Shown here piece by piece: positions 2,392-48,645 of a stretch of 64,000 nucleotides of DNA (within the stretch, counting starts at the first letter, position 1; the number at the start of each line of letters is the position of its first letter). Source of the DNA: Amphiscolops sp. MND2022 (Eukaryota); NCBI GenBank assembly GCA_964187785.1, contig OZ076412.1, forward strand, positions 67,580,001 to 67,644,000, given 5' to 3'. The position numbers and the translations under genes are program-made. Below the pieces are notes generated by a model that made no database searches, had not been told where the DNA came from, and worked only from the letters and a program-made list of their open reading frames with translations.

Positions 2392-2411
2392 TTTCTGTGA
2401 TTGTGTCGGTC

Positions 2412-4487: not shown

Positions 4488-4507
4488 TTTCTGTGATTGT
4501 GTCGGTC

Positions 4508-6583
4508 TCAGCCAAGTTCCATTTCGCCAACTTCCATAATTACTTCAACATCCAAAGAATAGATTTCCAGATAAGTCGAAAATGTCTCCAGACAGTTTCC
4601 CAAGATTTGCTCTGCTACAAATTTCCTCATCAAAGTTGACTGACCGCGGATGAGATATGTCAAAGAGAGTTCGTTCTCTAATTGTTCCATACTCAAGCTT
4701 TCAATTTGGCGTTCGGGAGCGATTATTGAATCATCCATCATCATCGCCAATAGATAAAGAGAATTTCCAACATTACGGCGACTGGAGTTTTTTCCTTTGT
4801 GTTCGATGCTCTCTTTGCATCCAATAGGAGGGGATTTGAGTTGTAATCTCAGTCGCTGCGCTGCATTTTGCTTTTTCTTTTCTGGCAGGTCGTTTTTCGT
4901 AGCTACATCCCAGTTTTCTCTTAGTAACTGCAATGCTGTGGAGTTTGGCTTTCGCTACTGTTTGTAGAGCGTCACCGAGCTTCTCTCACCGCAAAACTCC
5001 AATTTCATTTCATGTGGGTTTCTTACAGGCTCCCGTAGATCATGAGAAACTTCCAATTTACCAAAACGCCCATACTGAACCCACATTGTCTTGAACGGTG
5101 CAGCCGGCCCATTGCAAGACCCGTTGCTCCAACTTGTTGCTGTTGGGACTTTCAAAGAAGATATTTGCATTCTCGTCACCGATAGGTTGTCTCTCAAATC
5201 ATGTAGCCAAAGTGGCTCGTCTTGTGGTGTTCCATTCACGTTCAACTGAGCTCCTTCCGCTATTTCCTGTATCAGATTCCAGTTATGTTCAATCTTCCAA
5301 GATCTTTTCGTCAGTTGCTTGCGGTGGCCGTTGCTCAATTGAGTTTCATCAATGACGTTAGCTTGTGCCACTGCGTCCATCCCTGAGTTGCCATTACCAG
5401 TCCAAAGGTTCCATGCATTTCTATGACTTGGAATATATTCTTCAACAAGGTTTATTTCGAAGTCAAAGTCAGGTTTCCTTTCGAAGGTTTGTTTATAATC
5501 TCTGACATTGCCTTCCACGGGTTTGTCGCGCGTCATGGTAACGTGGCATAGCTGTTGATACATGGCTAATTCATTCAAATCTTCCTGCAGTACACATTGC
5601 TGCTCTTTCACAAAACCATAACTTTGGTCCAATTCAAGACATTTGTTTCCTTCTTCAAGGAGTAGATTACTGTCATAAAACATTGTCACTTGGAATAGTT
5701 TCCCTTGTTGTACGTCCTGTGGTACGGTGGTGACTTCTGCACTCTTTTGCAGCAGTTCAAATTGCACACTCGGTTCTTCCGAAGTTTCATTGTTCGATGT
5801 GAAGGCTAAGCTTCGATGCTCTTTCATAGTTTCAGTCATTGTGTAATCCAAGGTCTCTTCTGTTTGCACTTTCAAGTGCCCGCTCATGACCATGTGAATC
5901 TCGTCATTGAAAACTTGTTCTGTATCCACGAGGAGAGTTTCTGAATGGAAGTCTTGCCGGCCATCGTTTACAACGAACGTTTCTGGCCAGTTCCGCCTCC
6001 ATTCTGCTGTGAGATTCTTCGAGGTGTCTTTGTTCGCATCGCTTTCAACATTTGTCATATTTGAGTCTTCATGTGCTTCACGTTTGATAATTTTGTCTTG
6101 CAACTTTCCATGGCTTGGACACTTGTCTGAACACTTCATCTGCTCAGGTTGCCATTTTTTCCTTGTACACTTTCCTTTTGTTGTACAGTCAAGAGCTTTG
6201 AGCAAAGCCCTTTCTTCTTGCTTGCCCATACATTCGTCTTTTCTTTTCAGCGATTCATTTCGATCAATTGAACTTTGTTTGCTCGAAGTTTGCTTTGTTT
6301 GAGTTTGCTTCACCGTTCTCATCATTGAACTAGTTTCAACGATTTTATGGTTCGAGCGCCAATGTGATAAAACAATGCACTTTGAATCAATTCGCCCAAA
6401 ACTGGGTTCCTTGTTGTTTCTCAGGTGTGACTCCTTGTCCGTCACTGCATTCATGTCGTTCTGAGAACGAGTGCTTCGTCCACGCAGTTCAGTTCCTGTA
6501 AGAGGCTTTGTTGAGGTCGACATTGCCTTGACGGTCCGATAACATTCCAGCGGACCTTTGCATGGTTGCAACTGCTTTGCCAC
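4508..6583 (-). pseudogene. Array unit U2: ORF truncated at codon 543 by GAG->TAG
   Basis: ORFs 4955-6583 and 4508-4933 are in the same frame; plus strand TTCGCTACTG versus TTCGCTCCTG in intact units. Confidence 0.8.
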
Positions 6584-6603
6584 TTTCTGTGATTGTGTCG
6601 GTC

Positions 6604-8679
6604 TCAGCCAAGTTCCATTTCGCCAACTTCCATAATTACTTCAACATCCAAAGAATAGATTTCCAGATAAGTCGAAAATGTCTCCAGACAGTTTCCCAAG
6701 ATTTGCTCTGCTACATATTTCCTCATCAAAGTTGACTGACCGCGGATGAGATATGTCAAAGAGAGTTCGTTCTCTAATTGTTCCATACTCAAGCTTTCAA
6801 TTTGGCGTTCGGGAGCGATTATTGAATCATCCATCATCATCGCCAATAGATAAAGAGAATTTCCAACATTACGGCGACTGGAGTTTTTTCCTTTGTGTTC
6901 GATGCTCTCTTTGCATCCAATAGGAGGGGATTTGAGTTGTAATCTCAGTCGCTGCGCTGCATTTTGCTTTTTCTTTTCTGGCAGGTCGTTTTTCGTAGCT
7001 ACATCCCAGTTTTCTCTTAGTAACTGCAATGCTGTGGAGTTTGGCTTTCGCTACTGTTTGTAGAGCGTCACCGAGCTTCTCTCACCGCAAAACTCCAATT
7101 TCATTTCATGTGGGTTTCTTACAGGCTCCCGTAGATCATGAGAAACTTCCAATTTACCAAAACGCCCATACTGAACCCACATTGTCTTGAACGGTGCAGC
7201 CGGCCCATTGCAAGACCCGTTGCTCCAACTTGTTGCTGTTGGGACTTTCAAAGAAGATATTTGCATTCTCGTCACCGATAGGTTGTCTCTCAAATCATGT
7301 AGCCAAAGTGGCTCGTCTTGTGGTGTTCCATTCATGTTCAACTGAGCTCCTTCCGCTATTTCCTGTATCAGATTCCAGTTATGTTCAATCTTCCAAGATC
7401 TTTTCGTCAGTTGCTTGCGGTGGCCGTTGCTCAATTGAGTTTCATCAATGACGTTAGCTTGTGCCACTGCGTCCATCCCTGAGTTGCCATTACCAGTCCA
7501 AAGGTTCCATGCATTTCTATGACTTGGAATATATTCTTCAACAAGGTTTATTTCGAAGTCAAAGTCAGGTTTCCTTTCGAAGGTTTGTTTATAATCTCTG
7601 ACATTGCCTTCCACGGGTTTGTCGCGCGTCATGGTAACGTGGCATAGCTGTTGATACATGGCTAATTCATTCAAATCTTCCTGCAGTACACATTGCTGCT
7701 CTTTCACAAAACCATAACTTTGGTCCAATTCAAGACATTTGTTTCCTTCTTCAAGGAGTAGATTACTGTCATAAAACATTGTCACTTGGAATAGTTTCCC
7801 TTGTTGTACGTCCTGTGGTACGGTGGTGACTTCTGCACTCTTTTGCAGCAGTTCAAATTGCACACTCGGTTCTTCCGAAGTTTCATTGTTCGATGTGAAG
7901 GCTAAGCTTCGATGCTCTTTCATAGTTTCAGTCATTGTGTAATCCAAGGTCTCTTCTGTTTGCACTTTCAAGTACCCGCTCATGACCATGTGAATCTCGT
8001 CATTGAAAACTTGTTCTGTATCCACGAGGAGAGTTTCTGAATGGAAGTCTTGCCGGCCATCGTTTACAACGAACGTTTCTGGCCAGTTCCGCCTCCATTC
8101 TGCTGTGAGATTCTTCGAGGTGTCTTTGTTCGCATCGCTTTCAACATTTGTCATATTTGAGTCTTCATGTGCTTCACGTTTGATAATTTTGTCTTGCAAC
8201 TTTCCATGGCTTGGACACTTGTCTGAACACTTCATCTGCTCAGGTTGCCATTTTTTCCTTGTACACTTTCCTTTTGTTGTACAGTCAAGAGCTTTGAGCA
8301 AAGCCCTTTCTTCTTGCTTGCCCATACATTCGTCTTTTCTTTTCACCGATTCATTTCGATCAATTGAACTTTGTTTGCTCGAAGTTTGCTTTGTTTGAGT
8401 TTGCTTCACCGTTCTCATCATTGAACTAGTTTCAACGATTTTATGGTTCGAGCGCCAATGTGATAAAACAATGCACTTTGAATCAATTCGCCCAAAACGG
8501 GGTTCCTTGTTGTTTCTCAGGTGTGACTCCTTGTCCGTCACTGCATTCATGTCGTTCTGAGAGTGAGTGCTTCGTCCACGCAGTTCAGTTCCTGTAAGAG
8601 GCTTTGTTGAGGTCGACATTGCCTTGACGGTCCGATAACATTCCAGCGGACCTTTGCATGGTTGCAACTGCTTTGTCAC
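6604..8679 (-). pseudogene. Array unit U3: same nonsense allele as U2
   Basis: ORFs 7051-8679 and 6604-7029; identical stop position. Confidence 0.8.
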
Positions 8680-8699
8680 TTTCTGTGATTGTGTCGGTC

Positions 8700-10775
8700 T
8701 CAGCCAAGTTCCATTTCGCCAACTTCCATAGTTACTTCAACATCCAAAGAATAGATTTCCAGACAAGTCGAAAATGTCTCCAGACAGTTTCCCAAGATTT
8801 GCTCTGCTACATATTTCCTCATCAAAGTTGACTGACCGCGGATGAGATATGTCAAAGAGAGTTCGTTCTCTAATTGTTCCATACTCAAGCTTTCAATTTG
8901 GCGTTCGGGAGCGATTATTGAATCATCCATCATCATCACCAAGAGATAAAGAGAATTTCCAACATTACGGCGACTGGAGTTTTTTCCTTTGTGTTCAATG
9001 CTCTCTTTGCATCCAATAGGAGGGGATTTGAGTTGTAATCTCAGTCGCTGCGCTGCATTTTGCTTTTTCTTTTCTGGCAGGTCGTTTTTCGTAGCTACAT
9101 CCCAGTTTTCTCTTAGTAACTGAAATGCTGTGGAGTTTGGCTTTCGCTCCTGTTTGTAGAGCGTCACCGAGCTTCTCTCACCGCAAAACTCCAATTTCAT
9201 TTCATGTGGGTTTCTTACAGGCTCCCGTAGATCATGAGAAACTTCCAATTTACCAAAACGCCCATACTGAACCCACATTGTCTTGAACGGTGCAGCCGGC
9301 CCATTGCAAGACCCGTTGCTCCAACTTGTTGCTGTTGGGACTTTCAAAGAAGATATTTGCATTCTCGTCACCGATAGGTTGTCTCTCAAATCATGTAGCC
9401 AAAGTGGCTCGTCTTGTGGTGTTCCATTCACGTTCAACTGAGCTCCTTCCGCTATTTCCTGTATCAGATTCCAGTTATGTTCAATCTTCCAAGATCTTTT
9501 CGTCAGTTGCTTGCGGTGGCCGTTGCTCAATTGAGTTTCATCAATGACGTTAGCTTGTGCCACTGCGTCCATCCCTGAGTTGCCATTACCAGTCCAAAGG
9601 TTCCATGCATTTCTATGACTTGGAATATATTCTTCAACAAGGTTTATTTCGAAGTCAAAGTCAGGTTTCCTTTCGAAGGTTTGTTTATAATCTCTGACAT
9701 TGCCTTCCACGGGTTTGTCGCGCGTCATGGTAACGTGGCATAGCTGTTGATACATGGCTAATTCATTCAAATCTTCCTGCAGTACACATTGCTGCTCTTT
9801 CACAAAACCATAACTTTGGTCCAATTCAAGACATTTGTTTCCTTCTTCAAGGAGTAGATTACTGTCATAAAACATTGTCACTTGGAATAGTTTCCCTTGT
9901 TGTACGTCCTGTGGTACGGTGGTGACTTCTGCACTCTTTTGCAGCAGTTCAAATTGCACACTCGGTTCTTCCGAAGTTTCATTGTTCGATGTGAAGGCTA
10001 AGCTTCGATGCTCTTTCATAGTTTCAGTCATTGTGTAATCCAAGGTCTCTTCTGTTTGCACTTTCAAGTACCCGCTCATGACCATGTGAATCTCGTCATT
10101 GAAAACTTGTTCTGTATCCACGAGGAGAGTTTCTGAATGGAAGTCTTGCCGGCCATCGTTTACAACGAACGTTTCTGGCCAGTTCCGCCTCCATTCTGCT
10201 GTGAGATTCTTCGAGGTGTCTTCGTTCGCATCGCTTTCAACATTTGTCATATTTGAGTCTTCATGTGCTTCACGTTTGATAATTTTGTCTTGCAACTTTC
10301 CATGGCTTGGACACTTGTCTGAACACTTCATCTGCTCAGGTTGCCATTTTTTCCTTGTACACTTTCCTTTTGTTGTACAGTCAAGAGCTTTGAGCAAAGC
10401 CCTTTCTTCTTGCTTGCCCATACATTCGTCTTTTCTTTTCAGCGATTCATTTCGATCAATTGAACTTTGTTTGCTCGAAGTTTGCTTTGTTTGAGTTTGC
10501 TTCACCGTTCTCATCATTGAACTAGTTTCAACGATTTTATGGTTCGAGCGCCAATGTGATAAAACAATGCACTTTGAATCAATTCGCCCAAAACTGGGTT
10601 CCTTGTTGTTTCTCAGGTGTGACTCCTTGTCCGTCACTGCATTCATGTCGTTCTGAGAACGAGTGCTTCGTCCACGCAGTTCAGTTCCTGTAAGAGGCTT
10701 TGTTGAGGTCGACATTGCCTTGACGGTCCGATAACATTCCAGCGGACCTTTGCATGGTTGCAACTGCTTTGTCAC
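8700..10775 (-). CDS. Array unit U4: intact 691-codon ORF
   Basis: Open frame nearly identical to U1. Confidence 0.55.
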   Translation of the reverse strand: MTKQLQPCKGPLECYRTVKAMSTSTKPLTGTELRGRSTRSQNDMNAVTDKESHLRNNKEPSFGRIDSKCIVLSHWRSNHKIVETSSMMRTVKQTQTKQTSSKQSSIDRNESLKRKDECMGKQEERALLKALDCTTKGKCTRKKWQPEQMKCSDKCPSHGKLQDKIIKREAHEDSNMTNVESDANEDTSKNLTAEWRRNWPETFVVNDGRQDFHSETLLVDTEQVFNDEIHMVMSGYLKVQTEETLDYTMTETMKEHRSLAFTSNNETSEEPSVQFELLQKSAEVTTVPQDVQQGKLFQVTMFYDSNLLLEEGNKCLELDQSYGFVKEQQCVLQEDLNELAMYQQLCHVTMTRDKPVEGNVRDYKQTFERKPDFDFEINLVEEYIPSHRNAWNLWTGNGNSGMDAVAQANVIDETQLSNGHRKQLTKRSWKIEHNWNLIQEIAEGAQLNVNGTPQDEPLWLHDLRDNLSVTRMQISSLKVPTATSWSNGSCNGPAAPFKTMWVQYGRFGKLEVSHDLREPVRNPHEMKLEFCGERSSVTLYKQERKPNSTAFQLLRENWDVATKNDLPEKKKQNAAQRLRLQLKSPPIGCKESIEHKGKNSSRRNVGNSLYLLVMMMDDSIIAPERQIESLSMEQLENELSLTYLIRGQSTLMRKYVAEQILGNCLETFSTCLEIYSLDVEVTMEVGEMELG

Positions 10776-10795
10776 TTTCTGTGATTGTGTCGGTC

Positions 10796-12870
10796 TCAGC
10801 CAAGTTCCATTTCGCCAACTTCCAAAATTACTTCAACATCCAAAGAATAGATTTCCAGATAAGTCGAAAATGTCTCCAGACAGTTTCCCAAGATTTGCTC
10901 TGCTACATATTTCCTCATCAAAGTTGACTGACCGCGGATGAGATATGTCAAAGAGAGTTCGTTCTCTAATTGTTCCATACTCAAGCTTTCAATTTGGCGT
11001 TCGGGAGCGATTATTGAATCATCCATCATCATCGCCAATAGATAAAGAGAATTTCCAACATTACGGCGACTGGAGTTTTTTCCTTTGTGTTCGATGCTCT
11101 CTTTGCATCCAATAGGAGGGGATTTGAGTTGTAATCTCAGTCGCTGCGCTGCATTTTGCTTTTTCTTTTCTGGCAGGTCGTTTTTCGTAGCTACATCCCA
11201 GTTTTCTCTTAGTAACTGTAATGCTGTGGAGTTTGGCTTTCGCTACTGTTTGTAGAGCGTCACCGAGCTTCTCTCACCGCAAAACTCCAATTTCATTTCA
11301 TGTGGGTTTCTTACAGGCTCCCGTAGATCATGAGAAACTTCCAATTTACCAAAACGCCCATACTGAACCCACATTGTCTTGAACGGTGCAGCCGGCCCAT
11401 TGCAAGACCCGTTGCTCCAACTTGTTGCTGTTGAGACTTTCAAAGAAGATATTTGCATTCTCGTCACCGATAGGTTGTCTCTCAAATCATGTAGCCAAAG
11501 TGGCTCGTCTTGTGGTGTTCCATTCACGTTCAACTGAGTTCCTTCCGCTATTTCCTGTATCAGATTCCAGTTATATTCAATCTTCCAAGATCTTTTCGTC
11601 AGTTGCTTGCGGTGGCCGTTGCTCAATTGAGTTTCATCAATGACATTAGCTTGTGCCACTGCGTCCATCCCTGAGTTGCCATTACCAGTCCAAGGGTTCC
11701 ATGCATTTCTATGACTTGGAATATGTTCTTCAACAAGGTTTATTTCGAAGTCAAAGTCAGGTTTCCTTTCGAAGGTTTGTTTATCATCTCTGACATTGCC
11801 TTCCACGGGTTTGTCGCGCGTCACTGTAACGTGGCATAGCTTTTGATACACGCTAATTCATTCAAATCTTCCTGCAGTACACATTGCTGCTCTTTCACAA
11901 AACCATAACTTTGGTCCAATTCAAGACATTTGTTTCCTTCTTCAAGGAGTAGATTACTGTCATAAAACATTGTCACTTGGAATAGTTTCCCTTGTTGTAC
12001 GTCCTGTGGTACGGTGGTGACTTCTGCACTCTTTTGCAGCAGTTCAAATTGCACACTCGGTTCTTCCGAAGTTTCATTGTTCGATGTGAAGGTTAAGCTT
12101 CGATGCTCTTTCATAGTTTCAGTCATTGTGTAATCCAAGGTCTCTTCTGTTTGCACTTTCAAGTGCCCGCTCATGACCATGTGAATCTCGTCATTGAAAA
12201 CTTGTTCTGTATCCACGAGGAGAGTTTCTGAATGGAAGTCTTGCCGGCCATCGTTTACAACGAACGTTTCTGGCCAGTTCCGCCTCCATTCTGCTGTGAG
12301 ATTCTTCGAGGTGTCTTTGTTGGCATCGCTTTCAACATTTGTCATATTTGAGTCTTCATGTGCTTCACGTTTGATAATTTTGTCTTGCAACTTTCCATGG
12401 CTTGGACACTTGTCTGAACACTTCATCTGCTCAGGTTGCCATTTTTTCCTTGTACACTTTCCTTTTGTTGTACAGTCAAGAGCTTTGAGCAAAGCCCTTT
12501 CTTCTTGCTTGCCCATACATTCGTCTTTTCTTTTCACCGATTCATTTCGATCAATTGAACTTTGTTTGCTCGAAGTTTGCTTTGTTTGAGTTTGCTTCAC
12601 CGTTCTCATCATTGAACTAGTTTCAACGATTTTATGGTTCGAGCGCCAATGTGATAAAACAATGCACTTTGAATCAATTCGCCCAAAACGGGGTTCCTTG
12701 TTGTTTCTCAGGTGTGACTCCTTGTCCGTCACTGCATTCATGTCGTTCTGAGAGTGAGTGCTTCGTCCACGCAGTTCAGTTCCTGTAAGAGGCTTTGTTG
12801 AGGTCAACATTGCCTTGACGGTCCGATAACATTCCAGCGGACCTTTGCATGGTTGCAACTGCTTTGTCAC
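10796..12870 (-). pseudogene. Array unit U5: 1-bp deletion plus the shared nonsense allele
   Basis: Unit is 2095 bp; the frame breaks near 11850 (NELA|CIKSY) and the E->stop allele is at about 11243. Confidence 0.8.
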
Positions 12871-12890
12871 TTTCTGTGATTGTGTCGGTC

Positions 12891-14966
12891 TCAGCCAAGT
12901 TCCATTTCGCCAACTTCCATAATTACTTCAACATCCAAAGAATAGATTTCCAGATAAGTCGAAAATGTCTCCAGACAGTTTCCCAAGATTTGCTCTGCTA
13001 CATATTTCCTCATCAAAGTTGACTGACCGCGGATGAGATATGTCAAAGAGAGTTCGTTCTCTAATTGTTCCATACTCAAGCTTTCAATTTGGCGTTCGGG
13101 AGCGATTATTGAATCATCCATCATCATCACCAAGAGATAAAGAGAATGTCCAACATTACGGCGACTGGAGTTTTTTCCTTTGTGTTCAATGCTCTCTTTG
13201 CATCCAATAGGAGGGGATTTGAGTTGTAATCTCAGTCGCTGCGCTGCATTTTGCTTTTTCTTTTCTGGCAGGTCGTTTTTCGTAGCTACATCCCAGTTTT
13301 CTCTTAGTAACTGCAATGCTGTGGAGTTTGGCTTTCGCTCCTGTTTGTAGAGCGTCACCGAGCTTCTCTCACCGCACAACTCCAATTTCATGTCATGTGG
13401 GTTTCTTACAGGCTCCCGTAGATCATGAGAAACTTCCAATTTACCAAAACGCCCATACTGAACCCACATTGTCTTGAACGGTGCAGCCGGCCCATTGCAA
13501 GACCCGTTGCTCCAACTTGTTGCTGTTGGGACATTCAAAGAAGATATTTGCATTCTCGTCACCGATAGGTTGTCTCTCAAATCATGTAGCCAAAGTGGCT
13601 CGTCTTGTGGTGTTCCATTCACGTTCAACTGAGCTCCTTCCGCTATTTCATGTATCAGATTCCAGTTATGTTCAATCTTCCAAGATCTTTTCGTCAGTTG
13701 CTTGCGGTGGCCGTTGCTCAATTGAGTTTCATCAATGACGTTAGCTTGTACCACTGCGTCCATCCCTGAGATGTCATTACCAGTCCAAGGGTTCCATGCA
13801 TTTCTATGAGTTGGAATATATTCTTCAACAAGGTTTATTTCGAAGTCAAAGTCAGGTTTCCTTTCGAAGGTTTGTTTATCATCTCTGACATTGCCTTCCA
13901 CGGGTTTGTCTCGCGTCACTGTAACGTGGCATAGCTTTTGATACATGGCTAATTCATTCAAATCTTCCTGCAGTACACATTGCTGCTCTTCCACAAAACC
14001 ATAACTTTGGTCCAATTCAAGACATTTGTTTCCTTATTCAAGGAGTAGATTACTGTCATAAAACATTGTCACTTGGAATAGTTTCCCTTGTTGTACGTCC
14101 TGTGGTACGGTGGTGACTTCTGCACTCTTTTGCAGCAGTTCAAATTGCACACTCGGTTCTTCCGAAGTTTCATTGTTCGATGTGAAGGCTAAGCTTCGAT
14201 GCTCTTTCATAGTTTCAGTCATTGTGTAATCCAAGGTCTCTTCTGTTTGCACTTTCAAGTGCCCGCTCATGACCATGTGAATCTCGTCATTGAAAACTTG
14301 TTCTGTATCCACGAGGAGAGTTTCTGAATGGAAGTCTTGCTGGCCATCGTTTACAACGAACGTTTCTGGCCAGTTCCGCATCCATTCTGCTGTGAGATTC
14401 TTCGAGGTGTCTTTGTTTGCATCGCTTTCAACATTTGTCATATTTGAGTCTTCATGTGCTTCACGTTTGATGATTTTTTCTTGCAACTTTCCATGGCTTT
14501 GACACTTGTCTGAACACTTCATCTGCTCAGGTTGCCATTTTTTCCTTGTACACTTTCCTTTTGTTGTACAGTCAAGAGCTTTGAGCAAAGCCCTTTCCTC
14601 TTGCTTGCCCATACATTCGTCTTTTCTTTTCAGCCATTCATTTTGATCACTTGAACTTTGTTTGCTCGAAGTTTGCTTTGTTCGAGTTTGCTTCACCGTT
14701 CTCATCATTGAACTAGTTTCAACGATTTTATGGTTCGAGCGCCAATGTGATAAAACAATGCACTTTGAATCAATTCGCCCAAAACGGGGTTCCTTGTTGT
14801 TTCTCAGGTGTGACTCCTTGTCCGTCACTGCATTCATGTCGTTCTCAGAGTGAGTGCTTCGTCCACGCAGTTCAGTTCCTGTAAGAGGCTTTGTTGAGGT
14901 CGACATTGCCTTGACGGTCCGATAACATTCCAGCGGACTTTTGCATGGTTGCAACTGCTTTGTCAC
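12891..14966 (-). pseudogene. Array unit U6: private GAA->TAA stop
   Basis: ORFs 14034-14966 and 12891-14015 are in frame; TCCTTATTCA versus TCCTTCTTCA at about 14035. Confidence 0.8.
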
Positions 14967-16013
14967 TTTGTGATTGTGTCGGCCTCAGCCAAGTTCCACT
15001 TCGCGCTAATTCTATTTCTTGGTTGGCAACGTGTTTAGTCCTCGCGCTTTCTTCTTCGAGCCTAGCAATTTCGAGTTGTTCCGCTAGTATCCTCATGTCC
15101 ATTTCCTCTTGTTTCTTTCGGATCTCGGCTTTGCGTCTTGCGGCAGCTAGCTGTTCATCAATTTCATCTTGTTTCTTCATTGCTTCCAATTCTAGAAGAA
15201 GTATTCGTTTTGCATTTGATGACTTAGAACTAGCTGTTGTTCTGTTGCTCTTTGAGGTTGCTTTGACTGACCCTTTGTTGCTTTGTTCGGGTAAGACTTT
15301 CACATCACTGATTGATTTAATCACATCAGATCAGAGGGGTTGGATGCTCCAAAAACACGTCCTTCCTCTTCAGTTACCCTGCTTGACTGTGCCAGTGATT
15401 TACTTTCACTGGTTACTTCTACTGAGCAATTGCGTTTTGTTCGATTGAAGCTAGTTTGCTTGAGCTTCCTTGTGTGAGTGCATCTCATAGTCGCATCTGT
15501 GGAGATTCCACTTGCCACTTGGCGAAGTTTTGTTTTGTTTGTCTCATCTTTTGGGCCCTTCAACGTTGTCTTCACATCAGGGAACCAATATCCCCAGCTG
15601 GCTTCTAATTGTGCAAAGAATTCTTCCCATTCAGTCACACTTCGACTGAGCTGTCTTTGCTTTTCTTCATTTGTGAGGTCCAACATAAGATCTACGTTAT
15701 GCAACATTGCTTGTTTATTTTCGCGATATTCGAATACCCAATCATTCAATTCACCTTTGCAAAGACTAGCGCCTTGCTCGTCAAGCTTGTCATCCAAGTC
15801 TTTAATCAGAGTCAGTAGTCTTCCAACTTGGGTGGCCACAGCGTCCACATAAAAGCGCCACACGTACCAGTCGGAATCATTTTCCAAATCTCTTAATCTG
15901 GGGTCCATCAGTTCTTGGCTCTGATTTGTGTTTCTTTGATCAAATACATTTGTCATTCGAGGATGTTGCACCTCGAGCATTTCTTTCTTTCTGGCTTTCA
16001 TTTGTTCAGACAA
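14872..16013 (-). pseudogene. Gag-like region of the BEL/Pao element, split into two overlapping ORFs (230 aa and 150 aa)
   Basis: First ORFs downstream of the PBS; helical acidic segment followed by Ser-rich plus coiled-coil ASSKSSNAKRILLLELEAMKKQ...AAARRKAE, typical of BEL gag N-termini; runs into the array in another frame. Confidence 0.55.
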
Positions 16014-31519: not shown

Positions 31520-32315
31520 TCATCTAGAAGAAGGCATAATTTCGGTTTTGCAAGTTGCAATTCTGTCCTCTGCGGATAATGGTGAATCTAACTGCCATAT
31601 TTGTTCCAATATTCCTTGTTCGTGGGTAACACCAGGTTGAACTGTGAAAAAATCCGACAGTTTCTTGGGTTCAGATCTATCGATTTGTCGAGAAACACGT
31701 TGAAGTTCTTCGAGCTTGGGTATACTCACTGACTTGGCTATATTGTGGTCACTGTCCAATGGGTTTATAACTATTAAGGAACCTTTATCTCTGAAAGACC
31801 TTGGTTTTAGCTGTCCAGAAATGGGGTCCAACTTGAAGTTGCTGAAATCGAGGCGCGCCACGAAATTGAAAAAGCCACGAAGCAAAGTTTCCATTTTGTG
31901 ATCAGTTGGTCTTGAAAACAATTTCGGATCAATATTTCCCAAATCTTCGTCTTGTGTTTGACTCAGAACAAATTCAACTGAAGGAACAAGGTTTTCGGTC
32001 ATCAAAAAATGAAGGTACACGATGAGGACATGGAAAGATGTCAAATAACCAGGTTTGTAAGATGTCATGACGTTCATGTGACTTAGAATCTGTTTTATGG
32101 CTGTAAACACAGGAGGAAACAGAGGGTTCATACGGCCATAAATGAAGTTCAGACGCGACTGCAGCACTTCATTGCTTCCGACGTGGCCACTTACCAAATC
32201 CCCATTCACAGGCAGATAACGATGTTCGAAACAGACAAGAGGCACTGTTGCATTGAAAATATCGTAACAACTAGCAAACATTTCATACTGTCGCTTCATT
32301 TGATCGGAAAACTTC
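31520..32315 (-). CDS. MTPAP: Exon 2 of an MTPAP-like non-canonical poly(A)/poly(U) polymerase (central and PAP-associated domains)
   Basis: NATVPLVCFEH, GDL (third Asp), KPGYLTSFHVLIVYLHFL, METLLRGFFNF and INPLDSDHNIAKSV align in order with MTPAP NARCPLVRFSH...WITNFSLTMMVIFFL...LLKEFFEYF...QNPFETSLNISKNV; acceptor TTTCAG|G is phase 2. Confidence 0.8.
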
Positions 32316-32781
32316 CTGAAACAAAAAACCATGATGAGCACAAAGACTACAGCAAAATGCAAATTATTCCGTGAAGCCATAAATGCATCAATTATTCCTT
32401 GAGCTTCAATTACACGAGAAACAAATACGACAAATACGGGGACACAGTCAAGTCACATTGACAGTTTGCAAAACGTAAATAAAAGCCTTTGAAAAATGAA
32501 ATGTGACCGTGCAATATAGATATCATTGAAACACTACGTTAGACTTTGCTCGAAACGTTCGGAGATTTTGTTTAGATCTCCAGCAAACACTCCGGAGCAA
32601 TGATTTTAAAAAGTCACTCATATTGATGGTTCCAGTATGTCATCGCAATCAATTTTATACCAAATACAGATGTCATCAGGCTAGTCCCAAAACTTGGATA
32701 CCATTTCCAAGCCCCGTACTTTGCAAATGAATATCAATACCAGTGTATTGTACACGATACACGATATAGCTATCGCTACAC

Positions 32782-33262
32782 CAGGCATGGCAGCTAATCA
32801 CGCAAATTTTTCGCATAATTCACGCTGAAAACGTCACGCTAAGACGAAAATCACACCAAATTCACAATTTTTCACACTAAAACACGGGTTTTCAAGTGTT
32901 TCAATTCAACTTGGAGGAAATAACATACAGAAATAAAAGATGTTTCAATGCTTCTACATCAAGTCTTTGACGGTCTTCCCTAAGAATTTTCTTGAAATAT
33001 GAGAACGTGCGTTCCACTGGGCAAGAAGATGAAGGCAGAAAGCAATAGTTCATTGCAGTTTTGATAACATTGGAATTCTTTCGATATTGGCGTTCCAAAA
33101 ATCCATTATGAGAGGAGTTTCATATTTTTCATTCCTAACAAGGTTGAATTTCACGTCATAAGTTGGCAAAATCGATCAATTACATATTTCACGGCGCAAT
33201 TTGATTGAATAAAATTCACGGGATTGAACGAATTTCCACGCCGTGATTAACTGTCATGCCTA
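32782..33262 (-). mobile_element. Internally deleted hAT element keeping the C-terminal dimerisation-domain fragment (32901-33098)
   Basis: TIR CAGGCATGGCAGCTAATCACG / CGTGATTAACTGTCATGCCTA; TCGCTACAC duplicated on both sides; peptide LPSSSCPVERTFSYFKKILREDRQRL. Confidence 0.85.
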
Positions 33263-34070
33263 TCGCTACACGAGATAAACTTGATAAATAATACGGTGCA
33301 ACTTCAATTCGTCGAAAAATGGAAAGCTATTCAATGCTTCGAAAGAATTCCATATCAGCGATTATGTTCATTTGGTTATATTTTGTGGCGATTAACATAA
33401 TTGTTGTATGGCTCGGTCGCTTCGCTACCTTCGCCAAGTAGCAATATTGAGGCATGGCAATATGGCACATCGCTCCGCTTCTTTCCTGCATTTAGGACAC
33501 TAGGAGTATGTGAACATAGCTGACTACGTTATCGTAATTTTGAATGCTCGAAATTGATTGGACGAAATCAATTCATTCCATTATGTCCTACCATGCTCGC
33601 TAAATTAATGCGTGTTCGCCGAATTGAATGTTCGACGAATTGAACAGTCCCGAAATAATACGGCTACACGAAGAACGAATACACGGCTGTTAATAAACGA
33701 TTGATACACGACAAACAAGAACCAATCAAATTTCAATAAGTCAAATATTTTGCATAACTAATAATTCAGTTCATTTCCACTAACACTGTCAGAGTATTTT
33801 ATTATTCGTTAACTATTGTTAACGTTTATTTCACATTATAACTCGGATTTTACACAAAAGACTTGATTATTATTTTTGCCATGCCGCCATTAACGAAAGT
33901 TGATTATACTAAACTGTTTAGTATTCCTATCAATTCAGGAAAAAGTGCACTTTGTAGAACTTTTAAAGAGGAAATTCTATACAGAGCTGATTCCAGAGGT
34001 AATTTAAGAAAAAAATGATCAGACGAAGCATGAAAAAAAGCTCACGGAAGAGGAAAAGAGATATGAAGCC

Positions 34071-34420
34071 ATGAATGAGAAAGCTACTTTACCGGGCCAA
34101 TCCATCATCCGATTCTCACCACAGGGTGGACTCTCATGTGAAGTGGAACCATTTGCAAAGCAAAAATCTATTGAAGAACCAATTGCAAGAAATCTTTGTG
34201 CGATAGGGGGCTTGCCACTCACAATTACTGAGCGACCTTTTTTCCGGCAATTTATGAATGAAATCCAGCCGCGATTCACACAAAAAACCTACGGCACTAT
34301 AATGAAGCACATTTCGAAATTCGCAAATGATCTTGACTTTAAACTGAAGCGGTTATTTTCAGAGAGCAATGCGCGCCCTACTGTAATTCTAGAAGGCTAG
34401 ACAGCACAAAATGGAAATAT
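34071..34420 (+). pseudogene. hAT transposase N-terminal fragment
   Basis: GLPLTITERPFFRQFMNEIQPRF...TVILEG*TAQNG resembles hAT LPFSIVE.PGF...SLTLDGWTS. Confidence 0.55.
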
Positions 34421-35666
34421 TTGGGTCCTAGTTCACCAAAAATTCTGAAGTTATCTGATTTTTCATCGAGGAAGACAACAACAGAAGTGACTAACAACAG
34501 GGATTCCTGGAAAAATTAGTTTGAGTGTTATATCTTGACACGCCAAAAATACCTCAAAGTGGTGACCCAACAAAAAACGAGTTATTTGGGTCCTAGTTCA
34601 CCAAAAATTTTGAAATTATCTAATTCTTCATTGAGGAAAATAGGCCCCTCCGGGGCTCAGTACTATTTCTGCTTTATTCTTTATTTTTTTAAACTAAAAA
34701 ATTCATTAATAAAAGAATCATATCTGGAATACCAATACACTCTTGTTTAATCATTATTTAGCGCACAATTACATGTAATCACTGTACAAGTTTACACCGC
34801 CTTTAATTCTTCTCGGACTAAAGAAAATATAACTAATAAGCGTAGACGAAGTTTCGCATTCGCATTTGAATGCAGGCGAAGCTCTCAACGAACGAACAAT
34901 TAACGCTCATTCGCTTCATCTCAATAACTCGGGGCAACGAAAGCACAATTACGAACATTCGCTCGCTTCATCTCAATGACGTCAGCATACGAATGGATAA
35001 TTACCACTCGCTCGTTCCAGCGCACTAGAATTGAATTGATGTCGGCAGCTTGAGAAATTTATTTCCCACGCTTACAGTCACTGCCGAACAAAATATCTGA
35101 ATTATTCAGTATCGTCCGAAAAACTGTACTGAAAAAAAAGTAGAAAGTTTGAGGTTACAATAATATTCATGCTCAAGCAGAAATATTAAAAACAACAACA
35201 AAAGTGACTAACAACAGGGATTCCTGGAAAAATTTGTTTTAGTGTCATCTTGACACGCCAGAAATACCTCAAAGTGTTGACCCAATAAAATACCGGATTG
35301 AAAACTCTACATTTACCGAGTACAAAGGTTTTATTAAACATGAGCTTGACATATAGTCGCGTCCTGCTTCTGGAGCCTCAGTGGAACGATTATTCAGCAT
35401 TTGAGGCCTGCGCACAAGCAACAGGCGTAACAAATAAACCAGATACTCTTGAAAAACTTATTTGCCGCCCACAAAATGAGGGAGGAAAATCATAATCTGT
35501 GTTGCGTTTTTTACAAAATTCTACCAGCTTTCCTCCCAGTTTCTTCATCCACCTCACTTGTAGTGCGCCATGATAGTACTTGACTATTTTAGTTACTTGA
35601 CTATTTAATTACTTGGTTTTAGTAAATATTAATTTAGCTTATTTAGTCACTGTGGCACACTGTCAC

Positions 35667-35751
35667 CGACTTCAAATATTCTTCATTTGCACTATACAGA
35701 CTTTGCTGGCAGTTTAGTCTGTATAGTGCAAATGAAGAATATTTGAAGTCG
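35667..35751. repeat. Perfect inverted repeat: 36-bp arms, 13-nt loop
   Basis: 35667-35702 is the exact reverse complement of 35716-35751. Confidence 0.97.
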
Positions 35752-36683
35752 AAGATATCGAAGAAAAAATTGATTCCTTGGGGATCAAGGGGATGTAGCA
35801 GTTTGTTCTGAAATCGCTAAAGATGGAACTCTTGGTCGCGCCAAAAAACCAGTGGCGAAGTTTTTCAAAAAACGGAAGTGTAATGTCATTGACATTATCG
35901 AATCAAACTATGAAACTATGAATGCAAACATTTGTTTTGGAATAAATATCGATGAAGGAATTTGAGTTCCATATAAGTAAAATAAGTGTGATAATTGTTA
36001 TTTTTTGTTTGATTCTTTTGGTTCATAAATTTCACTTCTCGTTCTACGTTGCTACCTAACACCAGCAATAATCTTAACTCAAGAAACTTTTACACAGAGG
36101 CGAAGCGGTGCTTCGCAACACATGACGAAGACATCGATTATTTTAATATGCGTATATATATTATTTTAATCGCATGCGTATTCAACAGTTCAACTTTGTT
36201 CAATAACGTCCCTATGGCACAGTGGTCAACACTGCCGTGCAATCGGGATGCTGCAGGTTCGAATCTCTCTGGGGTTTTGGCTTTTTTCTAAAAGGCGCTC
36301 ATTATGAAGTTGACTATAGTGGAAAAAAACTTACTTAGCTGGACTGCAATGCACATTGACTTCGTCATGTGCAATAACGCATATCTTTCTTTATGAGTAA
36401 ATTGGGAACCCCAGGGACCTAATACGTATCCGAAGAAAATTTTTGGCAGAGTACTCGAAAAAATAGATATGCGACTGTAAATCTTCTCCGAAACGCCGAA
36501 AAAGCGCCAAATTGCACGTTTTGGACCAAAACTAGAACATGCAGAGATAAAAAATTTCAGCCTGTCGGATGAAACAATTTGTGTATGTTCAAGAGGTATC
36601 GACACGTCGGAGAGAATACTGAAGGGACATTCCAGTTATGGTGTTTTGCTAAGAGTTCATGTACGGACATCGAAAGCTTTTTT

Positions 36684-37334
36684 TGTCGCTTTTCGATTAA
36701 GGAAAAGTGCCCGACTACTACAGTGACTAATTTTTGTCACTCTCACTCTGAATGGTCCACTTTTTGTATCCAAAGCCTCTAATATGAAATACAAAACCAT
36801 TTCAAAGCAGAAGGGTTACCCTTTCCACTTTTTCGGCACTATAGGACTTCTTCGAAAACTTTTAAATGTCTCCAAAGGGTCCCATTTCAACTTCTTCGAT
36901 ATTTTGCAACTGGATTTTCAAAAAGCCCAAAAGTTCCCCGCTTTTACAACTCTCGGCATTATGAGAATTTTCAAGAAGACATTTTTAAATATGCGGCTTT
37001 TTTTCGGCACTGTAGGACTTTGCGGAAGTTCTTTCGGTAAAATGGTACCCCTCCACTTTAAAACGTTTTTGGTTGGAAAAACGTTTTGCGAGAATTTGGT
37101 GGGTTTACGTCTGGGGTTTTCGGCACTGTAAGACGTTCAAAAAAATACGATTTTTTTCCAAAAGATACCTTTTTGTGGTTTCCAAAGGTTTTTGAGTCGT
37201 ATGCGTATCCCACCGAGTATTTTTCGTTACTGTAAAATTGATAAAATTTCAACAATAGTGTCCTGTTGCATATTTAAAATCTTTACTCTTTTGAACCTTG
37301 AGCGGGCGCCGACTTGGGCCGTTCCCGGCTTGTT
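36684..37334 (-). mobile_element. DINE/HINE-like element, inverted copy
   Basis: Ends GCGCCGACTTGGGCCGTTCCCGGCTTGTT (reverse complement of the family 5' end); the 3' stem-loop motif lies at about 36684-36730. Confidence 0.55.
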
Positions 37335-38088
37335 AAATTTTAAGGATGTTCAAACACTATCGGCCGAATATTTTGTCAGTTATTTATACCACCATTTAGG
37401 CGATGGGGAGCAAGAAACAAAATCTCATTGGACGAACTTTGCTGAAAATCCACCGTTAACATGGACATATTTAAACATCATCACCTTTTTGGTTTCTCTG
37501 CGCACGGTCCATTCGAAAGAAGAGAAAGCGATGAAAAAAAGTTGAAGAGTATGAAAAAAAAGAAGCTCCTCAAACTAACCGTCAGCTTATTCCTGTGGCT
37601 AAGTTTTTCCATATTTGCCAACTTTCTATGCGCACAATTGACGTCGACCTGGTAAGTATCTATGAGCACTTATTACTATTACTTGAGAATTTGAGCAATG
37701 AAAAAAAATTCGTAAAAAGTTCCAGTGCCAAAAAACATCCAATTGTAATTGTAGACATTTTGGATGCGTTCTAGATTCACTTTCAGTACGAGAGACTTTC
37801 TGGTAAATATGTAAAAAAGGCCTTTCAGTAACATATGGAGAAACAAAACTACCTTTTCTAAAAAGCATTTACATGATTTACATATCATCCAACCACAACC
37901 AAAGAGATTGTTAGAACAACATTGAGAATGTTCAAGCTACTGCATTGGACGAGCCGTTTCACAATTAGAAGGGTTCCCAACTGCCATGAAAGAGTCAGTG
38001 ACTGCACCAATCACGGCACAACTCAACACGCTGTAATCATTCAAACTTCAGATATCAACTTCACTAATGTTAAGTTGGTGAAAGCCTT

Positions 38089-38532
38089 AACAAGCCGGAA
38101 ACGGCCCAAGTCGGCGCCATATCTAAGGCTCAAAAATAGCAAAAGGACTTCAAAATGTCAAAGTATTTGTGAATTGGGGACCCTTTTATGAAAAAAATTG
38201 AAAAAAGTCTCACAATGCCGAAAAAACTGAAAGGGGGCAACCCTTTGAGATTTTTCAACATCCATTGTCGGAAAATATCAAAAAATTGAAGGGGGGACCC
38301 TTCGGTGAATTTTTTTTTCGAAAAAAAGTCTCACAGAGCCAAAAATAATCTAAGGGAGTACCCTTTGGACCCGTTGAGTTTCTTACATGATGTAAAAATA
38401 CTACTTCGTAAGCTAAATAAGAATTGTAAGAAATTGTAAGAAAAGTGGACCATTCAGAGTGAGATTGTCAGCTGAAAAAAACTACCCACTGTAATAGTTG
38501 GGCTTTTTCCTTAAAGGAAAAGGCGCCGACTA
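38089..38532 (+). mobile_element. DINE/HINE-like element
   Basis: AACAAGCCGGAAACGGCCCAAGTCGGCGCC ... TTTTCC-TTAAA-GGAAAA GGCGCCGACT. Confidence 0.55.
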
Positions 38533-39233
38533 ACAAACCGGGAACGGCGTAAATCTGCACCCCCACCAAGGCTCAAGCGTAAACGTGCATTGCCGTTTTC
38601 GGTGATAACAACTTTATTTTAACAACTTTTTTCGGCGTTGAACGCCTTCATGTGAAAAACATGGGGCAATGACTGACAAAATAATTGTGCCAGCGAGCAT
38701 AGCAACTGCAAGCAGACGTTGTTGGTGTCTGAAGCACCTGACACTGTCAATAGGTGTAATTTGATGGACTATCTGGGTGACTCAATATTAAAGATTGTTG
38801 CTCATTACGTTGATGCCCAGTGACACCCGTAAAATCTAAGAAGTTCACCAAGCTGCACCCCCCCCCCCCCCCGTGTACAGCGTCAAGGAACGGTCATGTG
38901 ATGGAACAGGTACATATTAGAACCTTCCCTTTTCAATAACTGCACTAACACCGGGGGACACAACACCGGTGGTTCGGTACCTTCAAAACAATCAGAGAAG
39001 CTAATAGTTTATTGTCGAACCTCTTCAATTTTAGTGGCTGGAGTGCATTCAATGACAGCAATGACGCAAAAAAAATCTGGATGCAAATAACGCCTAAACA
39101 TCTTCAAATTTGAGAGAACTGTTAGACGAAAGATTATCTTGAATATGACCAACGACACTCTTGCGCCTAAAGCTTAACAAGAAATGCAATACTAACTTTG
39201 CGCCTAAAGCTTAACAAGAAATGCAATACTAAC

Positions 39234-39895
39234 TTGAGTCCCAAAATAGAAGCTCTTCTATCTTGTGACCGTGATCCAGTAAATAAAATATCGATATCAC
39301 TGGATTTAGTGCCAAATCCACTCATCGAATTTCCAAAAAGTTCTCCCAGATAGTCACCTTCAGACCATTTTACAACTCGAAGCTTTGACAGCTCGACAAA
39401 TTGATCGTACACAAAGAAGCGATTTTCAAGATCGGTTGATTGATTACACGATACAAGGTGGTTGACTTGAATTTCGTCTTCGAGATTTGAGCCATGTTGA
39501 AATATGACTGTTTCTCTGGGAATTGAACGAAGATTTTTTGAGTTCAGTGAAATATTCACTCGCCTTTTGACGTCTCTGGTGGGTGTAATAGTCTTCAATG
39601 AGCCACGGAAGTCACTCAGAATAGAGTTCGAAATATCTGAATTCTTGCACTTGGCTAAAGCTGAAATTTTTCCGTTGAAAGACAAAATGTTTCGAACACG
39701 GAGATCTTTAAAACCCCGACTTTCCAATAAGTTGAGGGCTTCCAATTTGTCACAATCAGATAGAAGTATTGATCTTCTGCTTAACGCTAAATGATGGTCG
39801 TAAAAATCATTGTAGGTTCTCAAGTGTCTCCGACAGAGAATTTGCATTGATTTATGAGTTTTCATCATTCTCACGCTACGCCACAGACAAAACAA
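39234..39895 (-). CDS. MTPAP: Exon 1 of the MTPAP-like nucleotidyltransferase (transit peptide, RL-like domain, catalytic DxD)
   Basis: ATG start; first 28 aa basic and free of acidic residues, ending LRTY; YNDFYDHHLALSRRSILL is RL-domain-like; FGNSMSGFGTKSSDIDI is the Pol-beta NTase motif; donor AA|GTTAGT is phase 2, matching exon 2 (spliced product about 485 aa). Confidence 0.8.
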
Positions 39896-45699: not shown

Positions 45700-48645
45700 T
45701 TATATCAGAATGTGGTAATCCTGCATTTGGTTAGATTTTGAGGTTGAGTTGTGATGAAAATTAACGAAACCTGCGACGCTCTGAAATGTCTGAAGCCCTC
45801 AGGGTTGATAGACTGGGTAAATTGTAAGCTTTGCAACGGATGGGTTCGTATAAAATGCGCCAATTTATCAAAAACGGGAGCCCGGAGCCTTATCGAAATT
45901 AAATGTTGTAGATGCTTTTTAGTGAACACAATCCCTTAGTGTCACGATGATAACATTAGACCAGACACCCTTTTTAATTCAGGGTGTTTGTTGTTTACTT
46001 GAAAAGAGTTCCTAAAAATTCACGGATCCCTCTTGCTTAAAACTTGATACCCAAAATTAATGATAGGTGTGAAACCCCGTCAAATATTGTCTTGTGGTGC
46101 TCAATGCCCTTCTCTCTAAGCTATTTTTTGGAAAAACCACCTCGAGAAGGTTAACGTCAGAGGTCATCACTTAGTGCAATTATCAAGCAGCGTATTCGAG
46201 ATGGTGTCATTGAGAAAAGAACGAAATTCGACAGAAAATCGCAGCAGAAAAGCGAGTTATATCGACGACTGCGTTCCATTTGCACTAAATTAGACGAAGG
46301 TATTGTTAACGCCGGAATTAGAATGGCAGTACGCGACAACAAAACGCAGATTTCACGGTAGACAACTACGCCACCCTTAAGCTGAAACATCCGCAGAGAG
46401 AAACTTACTGTGTTCCGGACCCCACAGATATCGATTGTACTTCAACCCCGGAGTTTTTCGTCCACAAGGCTTTCATGTCTTTTCCCAACAGCTCTAGTGC
46501 AGTGATAGATGGTATTTCGTTACAAATTTTGAAAGATTTGACTGCCAAGTTGAACGGGCAAACTGGACTGAGTTTTCTCGGAGCCTTAACAAACCTTGTG
46601 AATGTGATTCTCGGAGGAAAAGTACCTTTCGAACTTCGGCCGTACTTCTATTGCGCGAAACTAATTGCGCTAAAAAGGCCCGATAGAGAACTTTGTCCTA
46701 TCGCTGTAGGCATTTATTTCCGCCAATTGTCCGCAAAATGTGCCGGATACTATGTCTTCGAATCACTTCAAGCAAGATATGGAAATCGACAAGTAGGTGT
46801 AGGCACCAAAAGGGGCGCTGAATTGGCCTCACATGTTTTCCGTTGTTTGATAGAAAGCCCTCAGCCCAAAGAAAACGTAATTTTGAAAATTGACTTTGAA
46901 AACGCTTTCGATTCGATAAACCGGCAATTCATGCTACAGAAAGCTTCTGAAATACACCCTGAAGTTTATAAGTATTCACAATCGGCGTACAGTCAGCCAA
47001 GTTTTCTTTTTTACGGTGATTCAGTAATCAAATCTTGTGAAGGGACCCAGCAAGGAGATCCTGAGTCTCCAGCTCTGTTTTCGGATTCCATTCAGGATCT
47101 GATTGACAGTTTAGAGTCGAAAACAAACTTATGGTACCCTGACGATGGAAATTTAAGTGATGATTACAGAACCGTTTTGAAAGATCTCAAAAAAATTGTT
47201 GAAGCGGAAAGAACGCTGGGACTCAAAATTAAACCCACGAAATGTCAAGTTTTTTCCCTGGTGACATCACTGAAAAACGACGATCGACAATTTTAGCATC
47301 TTTCCAAAAACTTTGCCCCGGGATCAAAGCACCAAAGAAAGATGAACTTATCCTTCTTGGCTCACCGCTCGGCCCGAAATCACAAGCAGACTTATTGGAA
47401 AAGACAATTAATGAACTGGAAAAAGTTAACGGGATTGTTGAAAAACTAGATGCGCACTATGGTTTTTATGTTGAAAAATTGCTTCAGTTTGCCAAAGTTG
47501 TTGTACTTCCTGAGAACCAGTACATGTTTTATTCATCCAGCTCTCTTGGGGGAATATGACAAAACCGTGCGCGACGGACTTTCCAAAGTGTGTAACGTGA
47601 AGTTCGACGATATTCTGAGTACTCAGCTGGCTCTGCCTGCTGAGATGGGTGGTCTTGGGGTTTCATCCGCATAATTATTAGCACTTCCCAGCTTTCTGGT
47701 CTCAGCATTTGGTGCGAGTGACTTTCTCACGACGATTTTTTCGGAAACATTCGAAGTTCACAAAAGCGCTTGAGAAGTGGTTGAGTTTGACGAATGAACA
47801 AGTAAGTCCTCTCGATGGAACTCAGAAAAATTGGACACAACCGGTCCACGTCAAAACCGCCCAAGATTTGATTTCTAGAATGGATGACAAACGTTCTAAA
47901 ATTTTTACCGCTCATCAAGGCAAATTCGGGTCTCAATGGCTGAACGTCGTTCCTTGCAAGAACCATGATCAGCAACTTTGAATTTCAATTGGTTTGCGTC
48001 TCGATGCCAACATCTGCGTTGCGCATACGTGCCACTGTGGTAAAAGAGTTGAACGGGACCGTTTACAGGTCTTTCTTGCACCAAGAGTGCTGGTCGCTTC
48101 TCACGTCATGCTACTCTGAATTTTCTCTTAAACAGACGTTGGGATCTCTCAACTTGCCTTCAATGCTCGAACCGCGTTGACTGTACCGAACTGATGGCGA
48201 ACTGACAGACGGTGTTACCATGGTTCCTTGGGAAATGGGTAAACAGCTGGTGTGAAATGTCACGGTTGTGGATGCTCTTGCACCCAGTCGCCTGAATCAA
48301 AGCTCTTTATGCAACCCGGGAACCACCGCCACCGAGGCTGAAGCGCATAAAATTGAGAAGTAACGCAAATTAATAGACAATGGATGCATTTTTCAGCCGG
48401 TGGCCTTTGAAGTACAGGGTTCTTTAGGCGAGAGCAGTGAAATTTTCATCACGCGTCTCTGCAAAATGCTCTGTCGTTTGCACGACGATCAACGAGCTGG
48501 CATCTTTTTGAAGCAACGGATTTCAATGGCTCCTCAGATCGGCAATGCGGCCTGTGTTCTAGGAACTGTGAGCGACAGAGATGCGTTCGAAGAAATTTAT
48601 TACAATTAGCTCAATTTTTTTGACCTTTATATCATAGCAGCTTTA
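45700..48645 (+). mobile_element. Degenerate CRE-clade-like non-LTR retrotransposon (PHD finger, RT, restriction-like endonuclease)
   Basis: RT: AKLIALKRPDRELCPIAVG, QVGVGTKRGAE, KIDFENAFDS, GTQQGDP, WYPDDG. REL: DGVTMVPWEMGKQLV*NVTVVD...FQPVAFEVQGSLG (about 48190-48609). C4HC3-like CDALKC...WVNCKLCNGWVRIKC...CCRC at 45751-45939. Many stops and frameshifts. Confidence 0.8.

Follow-up and report, generated by a model that had tools for sequence, protein, structure and literature searches.

The window analyzed here, a stretch of 64,000 nucleotides from Amphiscolops sp. MND2022 (assembly GCA_964187785.1, contig OZ076412.1, positions 67,580,001 to 67,644,000), carries on its minus strand a two-exon gene (39868 to 31520 in window coordinates) for a putative RNA-tailing enzyme. 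We consider this gene, with a probability of about 0.6, to be a genuine, selected and single-copy orthologue of MTPAP (PAPD1/TENT6), the poly(A) polymerase found in mitochondria, and one that most likely adds A tails, perhaps with a broadened use of UTP. By homology, the enzyme would be imported into mitochondria and add untemplated 3' tails to mitochondrial RNAs; MTPAP has been described as the sole terminal nucleotidyltransferase (TENT) acting in animal mitochondria (PMC7988573). A sequence-only reading of the same window had drawn attention to a histidine in the nucleotide-recognition motif of the predicted protein (His402) and had proposed either a mitochondrial uridylyltransferase or a re-targeted TUT1-like enzyme.

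Assignment to the MTPAP family

When exon 2 was searched against the PDB as a single sequence (phmmer), chicken mitochondrial poly(A) polymerase (mtPAP) was recovered with an E-value of 2.9e-9 and nothing else was significant. A profile of the four-member clade to which the gene belongs, comprising the window protein, the relatives L014 and L015 from outside the window's assembly and the 474-residue protein P0097, ranked mtPAP first among solved structures (5.7e-21), followed by TUT4 (2.6e-11) and GLD-2 (2.4e-8). Among 1.84 billion representative sequences there were 96 matches, three of them close and the others 21–33% identical and mostly 450–650 residues long. Thirty of the 96 were looked up: those with a family annotation were all called MTPAP or ‘poly(A) RNA polymerase, mitochondrial(-like)’, and the remainder had no name, a hypothetical label or the name of a fused or unrelated gene model (Trichinella, Trichuris). 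When the profile of a 74-sequence alignment was run against a clustered protein database, only two proteins were matched, and the Atlas feature search gave generic clusters of poly(A) polymerases (PAP) and terminal uridylyltransferases (TUTases).

The predicted folds point to the same family. For the AlphaFold2 (AF2) model of exon 2 (mean predicted local distance difference test score, pLDDT, of 85), the top 12 Foldseek matches were all chicken mtPAP, after which came TUT1, CutA, GLD-2, TUT7 and Cid1. The model of exon 1 (pLDDT 76), which was built on an alignment of MTPAP sequences, contains an N-terminal RRM-like (RL-type) domain at residues 19–86 (39611–39814; pLDDT 88–95) with the order helix-strand-helix-strand-strand-helix, after which the palm begins. 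At E <= 0.001, Foldseek matched it exclusively to chains of chicken mtPAP, with human mtPAP next at E 0.0017, and it aligned with the mtPAP chains over about 205–220 columns. An hhalign comparison of the clade profile with the N-terminal consensus of the MTPAP family gave 98.6%, a value inflated by one sequence common to both alignments. The Pfam RL model PF17797 had no match in the window protein, and Pfam searches of the separate exons produced only matches below the curated cut-offs, including the irrelevant tRNA_NucTransf2.

The catalytic signature is complete. The nucleotidyltransferase signature FGNSMSGFGTKSSDIDI (39287–39337) has the form GNSMSGFG...SDIDI with the catalytic D191 and D193, and the third catalytic aspartate, D251, lies in VNGDL on exon 2 (32195–32209); alignment A5 shows no variation at G179, D191 and D193, nor does alignment A2 in the column of D251 (D39 of exon 2). 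The stretch between the DxD and the third Asp is about 15–20 residues shorter than in the family consensus. MTPAP is an obligate homodimer that forms via the N-terminal domain and a palm insertion.

In a tree of 91 rows, the clade of the window gene, L014, L015 and P0097 was strongly supported on a long stem (1.32). Constraining it to group with the other 82 MTPAP rows, set against TUT1-like, TENT4-like and three stray rows, gave a tree 54 log-likelihood units above the free quick tree, with a p-value of 0.96 in the approximately unbiased (AU) test. The PDB search, the clade profile, the Foldseek comparisons and the AU test thus bear out the earlier suggestion of an MTPAP-type enzyme with an MTPAP-like order of domains.

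MTPAP, with structures from chicken (5A2V-5A30) and human (3PQ1), is therefore the closest known system by both sequence and fold. The window protein shares with it the N-terminal RRM-like domain, the palm and the fingers, the catalytic triad, and the motif N-P-[LF]-[ED]-x-x-X-N-[IV]-[SA]-K-x-V, of which the first Asn (human N478) is mutated in SPAX4 (N478D). It differs from MTPAP in being about 100 residues shorter (476 vs 555–585), in its very short presequence-like stretch and in an identity of 20–30%, and the Pfam RL and PAP_assoc models remain below threshold. Two further differences lie in the nucleotide pocket, where His402 replaces chicken L478 and a Gln takes the place of Met or Cys at the equivalent of Cid1 N171.

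Gene structure, copy number and selection

Exon 1 (39234–39868, minus strand) starts with an ATG at 39868–39866 and encodes residues 1–211 and two bases of codon 212, ending at a donor GT that begins at 39233 (caa/gttagt). Exon 2 (31520–32315) follows an upstream tttcag acceptor and supplies the last base of codon 212 and residues 213–476, which form the remainder of the palm and the fingers (PAP-associated) domain, up to a tga stop codon at 31522–31520. The predicted splice joins the exons in phase, so that 211 + 1 + 264 residues give a protein of 476 residues from the first ATG. The location and strand of the spliced gene agree with the sequence-only reading, and its length of about 485 residues does not, because it was counted from a TTG at 39895 that is merely the edge of a mechanical open reading frame (ORF); the start at the first ATG (39868) is matched by the starts of the orthologues in L014, L015 and P0097.

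Both L014 (58% identity) and L015 (32% identity) have two exons with an intron in phase 2, as in the window gene. P0097 is encoded on a contig of 1,528 nucleotides, which has no room for introns and is therefore intron-free, and its alignment is colinear straight across the junction of the window gene; the splice junction is conserved in all three relatives.

The single intron (32316–39233, 6,918 nucleotides) is filled with highly repeated sequence resembling transposons or short interspersed nuclear elements, and the depth of read contigs reaches 1e5–1e6 at about 33300–33700, 34500–35700 and 35900–36500; very high-copy repeats make up most of the intron. A tRNA-like stretch lies near 36200–36290, where ARAGORN makes no tRNA call. 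A 36-nucleotide sequence that starts with the exon-1 donor GT is present twice, one base apart (39233–39198 and 39196–39161, minus strand); the 5' splice site is thereby duplicated, and use of the second copy would shift the frame.

Across the 1.07-Gb assembly, an MTPAP profile scored the window gene at 134.8 bits and the next locus, a TENT4-like gene, at 55 bits, and no paralogue of exon 2 or second MTPAP paralogue was found in searches of the whole assembly. A second, Leu-type MTPAP, for which a genome search had been proposed, is thus not among the genes recovered, and the window gene is the sole member of its family there.

The gene is under clear purifying selection, with a ratio of non-synonymous to synonymous substitution rates (dN/dS) of about 0.13 against L014, a comparison in which dS is saturated. 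In a second sampled individual, exon 2 differs at four sites, two synonymous and two non-synonymous (D399N and H351N), and H402 is unchanged; the adjacent 500 nucleotides of intron in the same sample have nine substitutions and a 7-nucleotide insertion, so variation there is denser than in exon 2. Many single-nucleotide polymorphisms at this nuclear locus separate two groups of samples, a pattern suggestive of two individuals or haplotypes.

Position of the histidine and the nucleotide pocket

The nucleotide-recognition motif NPLDSDHNIAKSV spans residues 396–408 (31727–31765), and the codon of His402 is CAC at 31747–31745, where the sequence-only reading had placed it. In the single-sequence phmmer alignment, H402 stands opposite the Leu of chicken mtPAP NPFEQDLNISKNV, which is L478 in the numbering of PMC4605311; in the alignments of the four-member clade profile, it pairs with the TUT4 His (human; DPFDLNHNLG) and falls on the gap of one residue in GLD-2. 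Because it aligns with the mtPAP Leu, the TUT4 His and the GLD-2 gap, we assign H402 to the position of Cid1 H336, and the published Cid1 numbering (D330, F332, E333, H336) gives the same register (PMC13702519). That part of the earlier claim therefore holds.

The residues around the histidine are for the most part those of MTPAP. In the phmmer alignment, Asn396 corresponds to chicken N472, and Phe306 is aligned with F372, which stacks on ATP (PMC4605311); the first motif residue is thus Asn, in contrast to the Asp of Cid1 (D330) and TUT4. At the equivalents of Cid1 N171/T172, the window protein has Gln264-Ser265 in LQSRL (32150–32164), a pair that is invariant across the four-member clade, compared with Asn-Thr in Cid1 and TUT4, Cys-Ser in chicken mtPAP and Met-Ser in most MTPAPs. 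With Asn at the first motif position and a Phe aligned to F372, the remaining ATP-type pocket is retained.

Compared with Cid1 (H336), TUT4/TUT7 and TUT1, the window protein thus has His at the same motif column and shares the catalytic core fold. It differs from them in having Asn rather than Asp at the first motif position and Gln-Ser rather than Asn-Thr at the ribose/pyrimidine contact and in its MTPAP-type N-terminal domain, and unlike these TUTases it groups with MTPAP. The comparison with an engineered GLD-2 (PMC4931116) is of another kind: that enzyme shows that gain of a His at the loop can push an A-adding enzyme toward UTP, but GLD-2 lacks the residue altogether, whereas the window protein substitutes a Leu in an otherwise MTPAP-type pocket.

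Recurrence of the histidine among MTPAPs

The histidine is found well beyond the window lineage. In the H336-equivalent column of 89 MTPAP-like rows, Leu occurs 61 times, His 17 times, Arg four times and other residues seven times, and at least 12 changes between His and non-His are required on the tree. Named proteins with His include those of mussels (Mytilus coruscus, M. californianus, M. galloprovincialis and M. trossulus), other bivalves (Sinanodonta woodiana, Ruditapes philippinarum and Mercenaria mercenaria), limpets (Patella vulgata and P. caerulea), the nemertean Tubulanus polymorphus, the tunicate Styela clava, Trichuris suis and several Trichinella species. The proteins of Sinanodonta and Tubulanus have the RL, MTPAP-like_central and PAP_assoc domains by Pfam. 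His-type proteins are placed in different parts of the tree, and this scatter implies independent switches between Leu and His; the Leu-to-His replacement is a recurrent natural variant of MTPAP and not a peculiarity of the window lineage. Within the window clade, two of the three relatives retain His402, and P0097 carries Ile.

We found no discussion in the literature of His in bona fide MTPAP orthologues. Chung et al. regarded the recognition loop as a hot spot in which uridylyltransferase activity has evolved several times; they also noted the ‘leucine in Papd1’ and wrote that the part played by this residue at the Cid1 H336 position has yet to be worked out (PMC4931116).

Many of the public His-type MTPAPs (Mytilus, Sinanodonta, Ruditapes, Patella, Tubulanus, Styela and Trichinella/Trichuris), which have the same Leu-to-His change in the same column of the same family, carry, in addition to the His, an Ala in place of Ser at the equivalent of Cid1 T172. 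The combination was seen in 8 of 16 His rows and 3 of 70 others (Fisher p 3e-5, uncorrected for relatedness, the independent pairs being too few for a sign test). Unlike these proteins, the window clade keeps Ser (Gln-Ser) and so departs from the His-Ala pairing. Independent pairs gave no support for co-variation of His with Asp at the E333 equivalent or with an acidic residue at position -1.

Mitochondrial genome

A complete-looking mitochondrial genome of 14,704 bp was recovered (contig G000:C1929; L027 and L028), in which the tRNAs are short, the genes are distributed over both strands, TGA encodes Trp and AGR encodes Ser. In cox1, cox3, nad5 and nad2 at least, an in-frame TAA precedes any downstream tRNA or gene on the same strand, and no clear T or TA truncated stops were present at the three gene ends that overlap predicted tRNAs. 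The stop codons neither require nor exclude A-addition, nor do they argue for U. Its cox2-trnD-cox3-trnY block is similar to one in the acoel Symsagittifera roscoffensis (PMC2973942); base composition and the strand of cox1 differ between the two.

A or U in the tails

We judge that the enzyme would still make A-rich tails for several reasons: the ATP-type pocket is otherwise kept; vertebrate mtPAP picks ATP mainly by the shape of the pocket, by stacking on the Phe and by contact with a main-chain carbonyl, and not by the side chain at the His/Leu position (PMC4605311); in mammalian mitochondria, no nucleotide is more abundant than ATP (PMC4605311); and the mitochondrial mRNAs of mussels that share this His are polyadenylated. 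Transcripts from the mitochondria of M. trossulus and, by citation, M. galloprovincialis are reported to be ‘typically polyadenylated’ (PMC3941564), and both species carry a His-type MTPAP. His402 may at the same time raise the acceptance of UTP and so bring some U into the tails, and vertebrate mtPAP already takes UTP in vitro (PMC4605311).

Several points weigh against this preferred reading of the gene as an A-adding MTPAP. Insertion of a His turned GLD-2 from the use of ATP to that of UTP (PMC4931116), and the His of Cid1 hydrogen-bonds uracil O4 (PMC13702519); because of these two results, a true shift toward U is possible. The tails in Mytilus are known from poly(A)-bearing cDNA (expressed sequence tag) clones and are compatible with some U (PMC3941564), and a second, Leu-type paralogue is possible in mussels, in which only a limited search was made for one. 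The case for mitochondrial import is drawn entirely from the composition of the N-terminus. Four public runs contain the locus as genomic DNA only, judged so because their contigs continue past the acceptor into intron sequence, and they lend no support to the splice or to expression. Finally, because of the long branch of the clade (stem 1.32), orthology rests on the best hits, the fold and the AU test and not on a well-resolved tree.

The strongest alternative is that the Leu-to-His replacement has retuned the enzyme, so that mitochondrial RNAs of the window lineage bear U tails or clearly mixed A/U tails, which we regard as possible, if doubtful. In its favor, beyond the results on GLD-2 and vertebrate mtPAP just given, the His occupies precisely the position that selects UTP, is conserved over about 32% identity in three of the four members of the clade as well as in two individuals, and is accompanied by a clade-invariant amide (Gln) at the pyrimidine-contacting Asn of Cid1 and TUT4, where other MTPAPs mostly have Met; moreover, nothing seen at the mitochondrial gene ends requires A-addition for the completion of stop codons. 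The Ile of P0097, the MTPAP-like Asn at the start of the motif in place of the Asp of Cid1 and TUT4, and the retained stacking Phe speak against it, as do the polyadenylated mRNAs of His-type Mytilus species and the abundance of ATP. The Cid1 mutant H336L, moreover, still prefers UTP (PMC13702519), and the His alone is thus not a complete switch.

The same idea can be extended from the window lineage to the family. If it held, His-type MTPAPs in general would be natural mitochondrial enzymes that add substantial U, and the dozen or more independent switches across animals would mark repeated changes in tail chemistry, a proposal that we consider unlikely. To our knowledge, the only other such changes in mitochondria are those of trypanosomes, where unrelated TUTases are responsible.

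Site of action and the other nucleotidyltransferase genes

The preferred reading, in which an MTPAP orthologue acts inside the mitochondrion, also has to be set against action elsewhere. The N-terminal stretch of residues 1–18 (39815–39868) is a possible short mitochondrial presequence by its composition: the first 30 residues include five Lys or Arg and four His, with no acidic residue before position 21, and a basic N-terminus without acidic residues is common to all four clade members. The confidence of the AF2 model is low over the first 10 residues.

A search of the genome with the Pfam palm model identified two TENT4-like genes, in which the motifs are also TENT4-like, and further loci may be TUT4/7-like and GLD-2-like, as read from their motifs only. 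A TUT1/Star-PAP-like gene was located at L009:1318-3213 (G000:C3, about 49,696,463–49,698,358), a single exon of 632 residues for which human TUT1 is the best solved relative. The presence of this separate gene argues against the suggestion that the window gene is a re-targeted TUT1-like enzyme, as do the best match to mtPAP in sequence and fold and the better tree with MTPAP. In the TUT1-like protein, an Arg (DPFEPNRNIS) occupies the position of the UTP-selecting His of human TUT1; a relative with 66% identity also has Arg, and one with 37% identity has His. In the window lineage, the TUT1-like enzyme has thus lost its His, whereas the MTPAP carries one.

A dually targeted MTPAP-derived enzyme, or one that works outside the mitochondrion, serving as a uridylyltransferase in the cytosol or nucleus that might compensate for the His-less TUT1-like gene, is a far less probable explanation. 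It would fit the exchange of His for Arg just described, the shortness of the presequence-like stretch (about 18 residues) and the statement of Chung et al. that human PAPD1 is the closest relative of TUT6/TUT1 (PMC4931116). Opposed to it are the basic N-termini of all four clade members, the retained MTPAP-type N-terminal domain and the status of the gene as the sole MTPAP-family member in an animal that has a normal mitochondrial genome to express. A non-working gene, whether a decaying copy or a wrong join of exons, is scarcely credible: the purely genomic public runs, the 36-nucleotide duplication that starts exactly at the donor site and the sub-threshold Pfam matches of the separate exons would suit it, but both exons keep an intact reading frame, no catalytic residue is missing, dN/dS is 0.13, the two-exon structure is common to two other species and colinear with the intron-free relative, and both halves give confident AF2 models.

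Neighboring sequences in the window

Elsewhere in the window, long ORFs of recurring size (691, 542, 542, 691 residues and so on) form a tandem array with a strong AT skew on the minus strand at 1296–16013. Upstream of the gene, on the plus strand at 46475–47296, a 273-residue ORF contains a reverse-transcriptase domain (RVT_1, E 7e-16) and is probably a fragment of a retroelement.

Implications

The principle that uridylyltransferase activity can arise through the recognition loop is already published, and the His of the window gene is an undiscussed but publicly visible recurrent substitution; the gene itself is an ordinary orthologue that carries it. Together with the His-type proteins of mussels, limpets, a nemertean, a tunicate and trichinellid nematodes, the window gene offers natural Leu/His pairs that bear on whether a single residue tunes the composition of mitochondrial tails. 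If the His does nothing in these enzymes, the rule that ‘His means U’ would not transfer to the MTPAP pocket.

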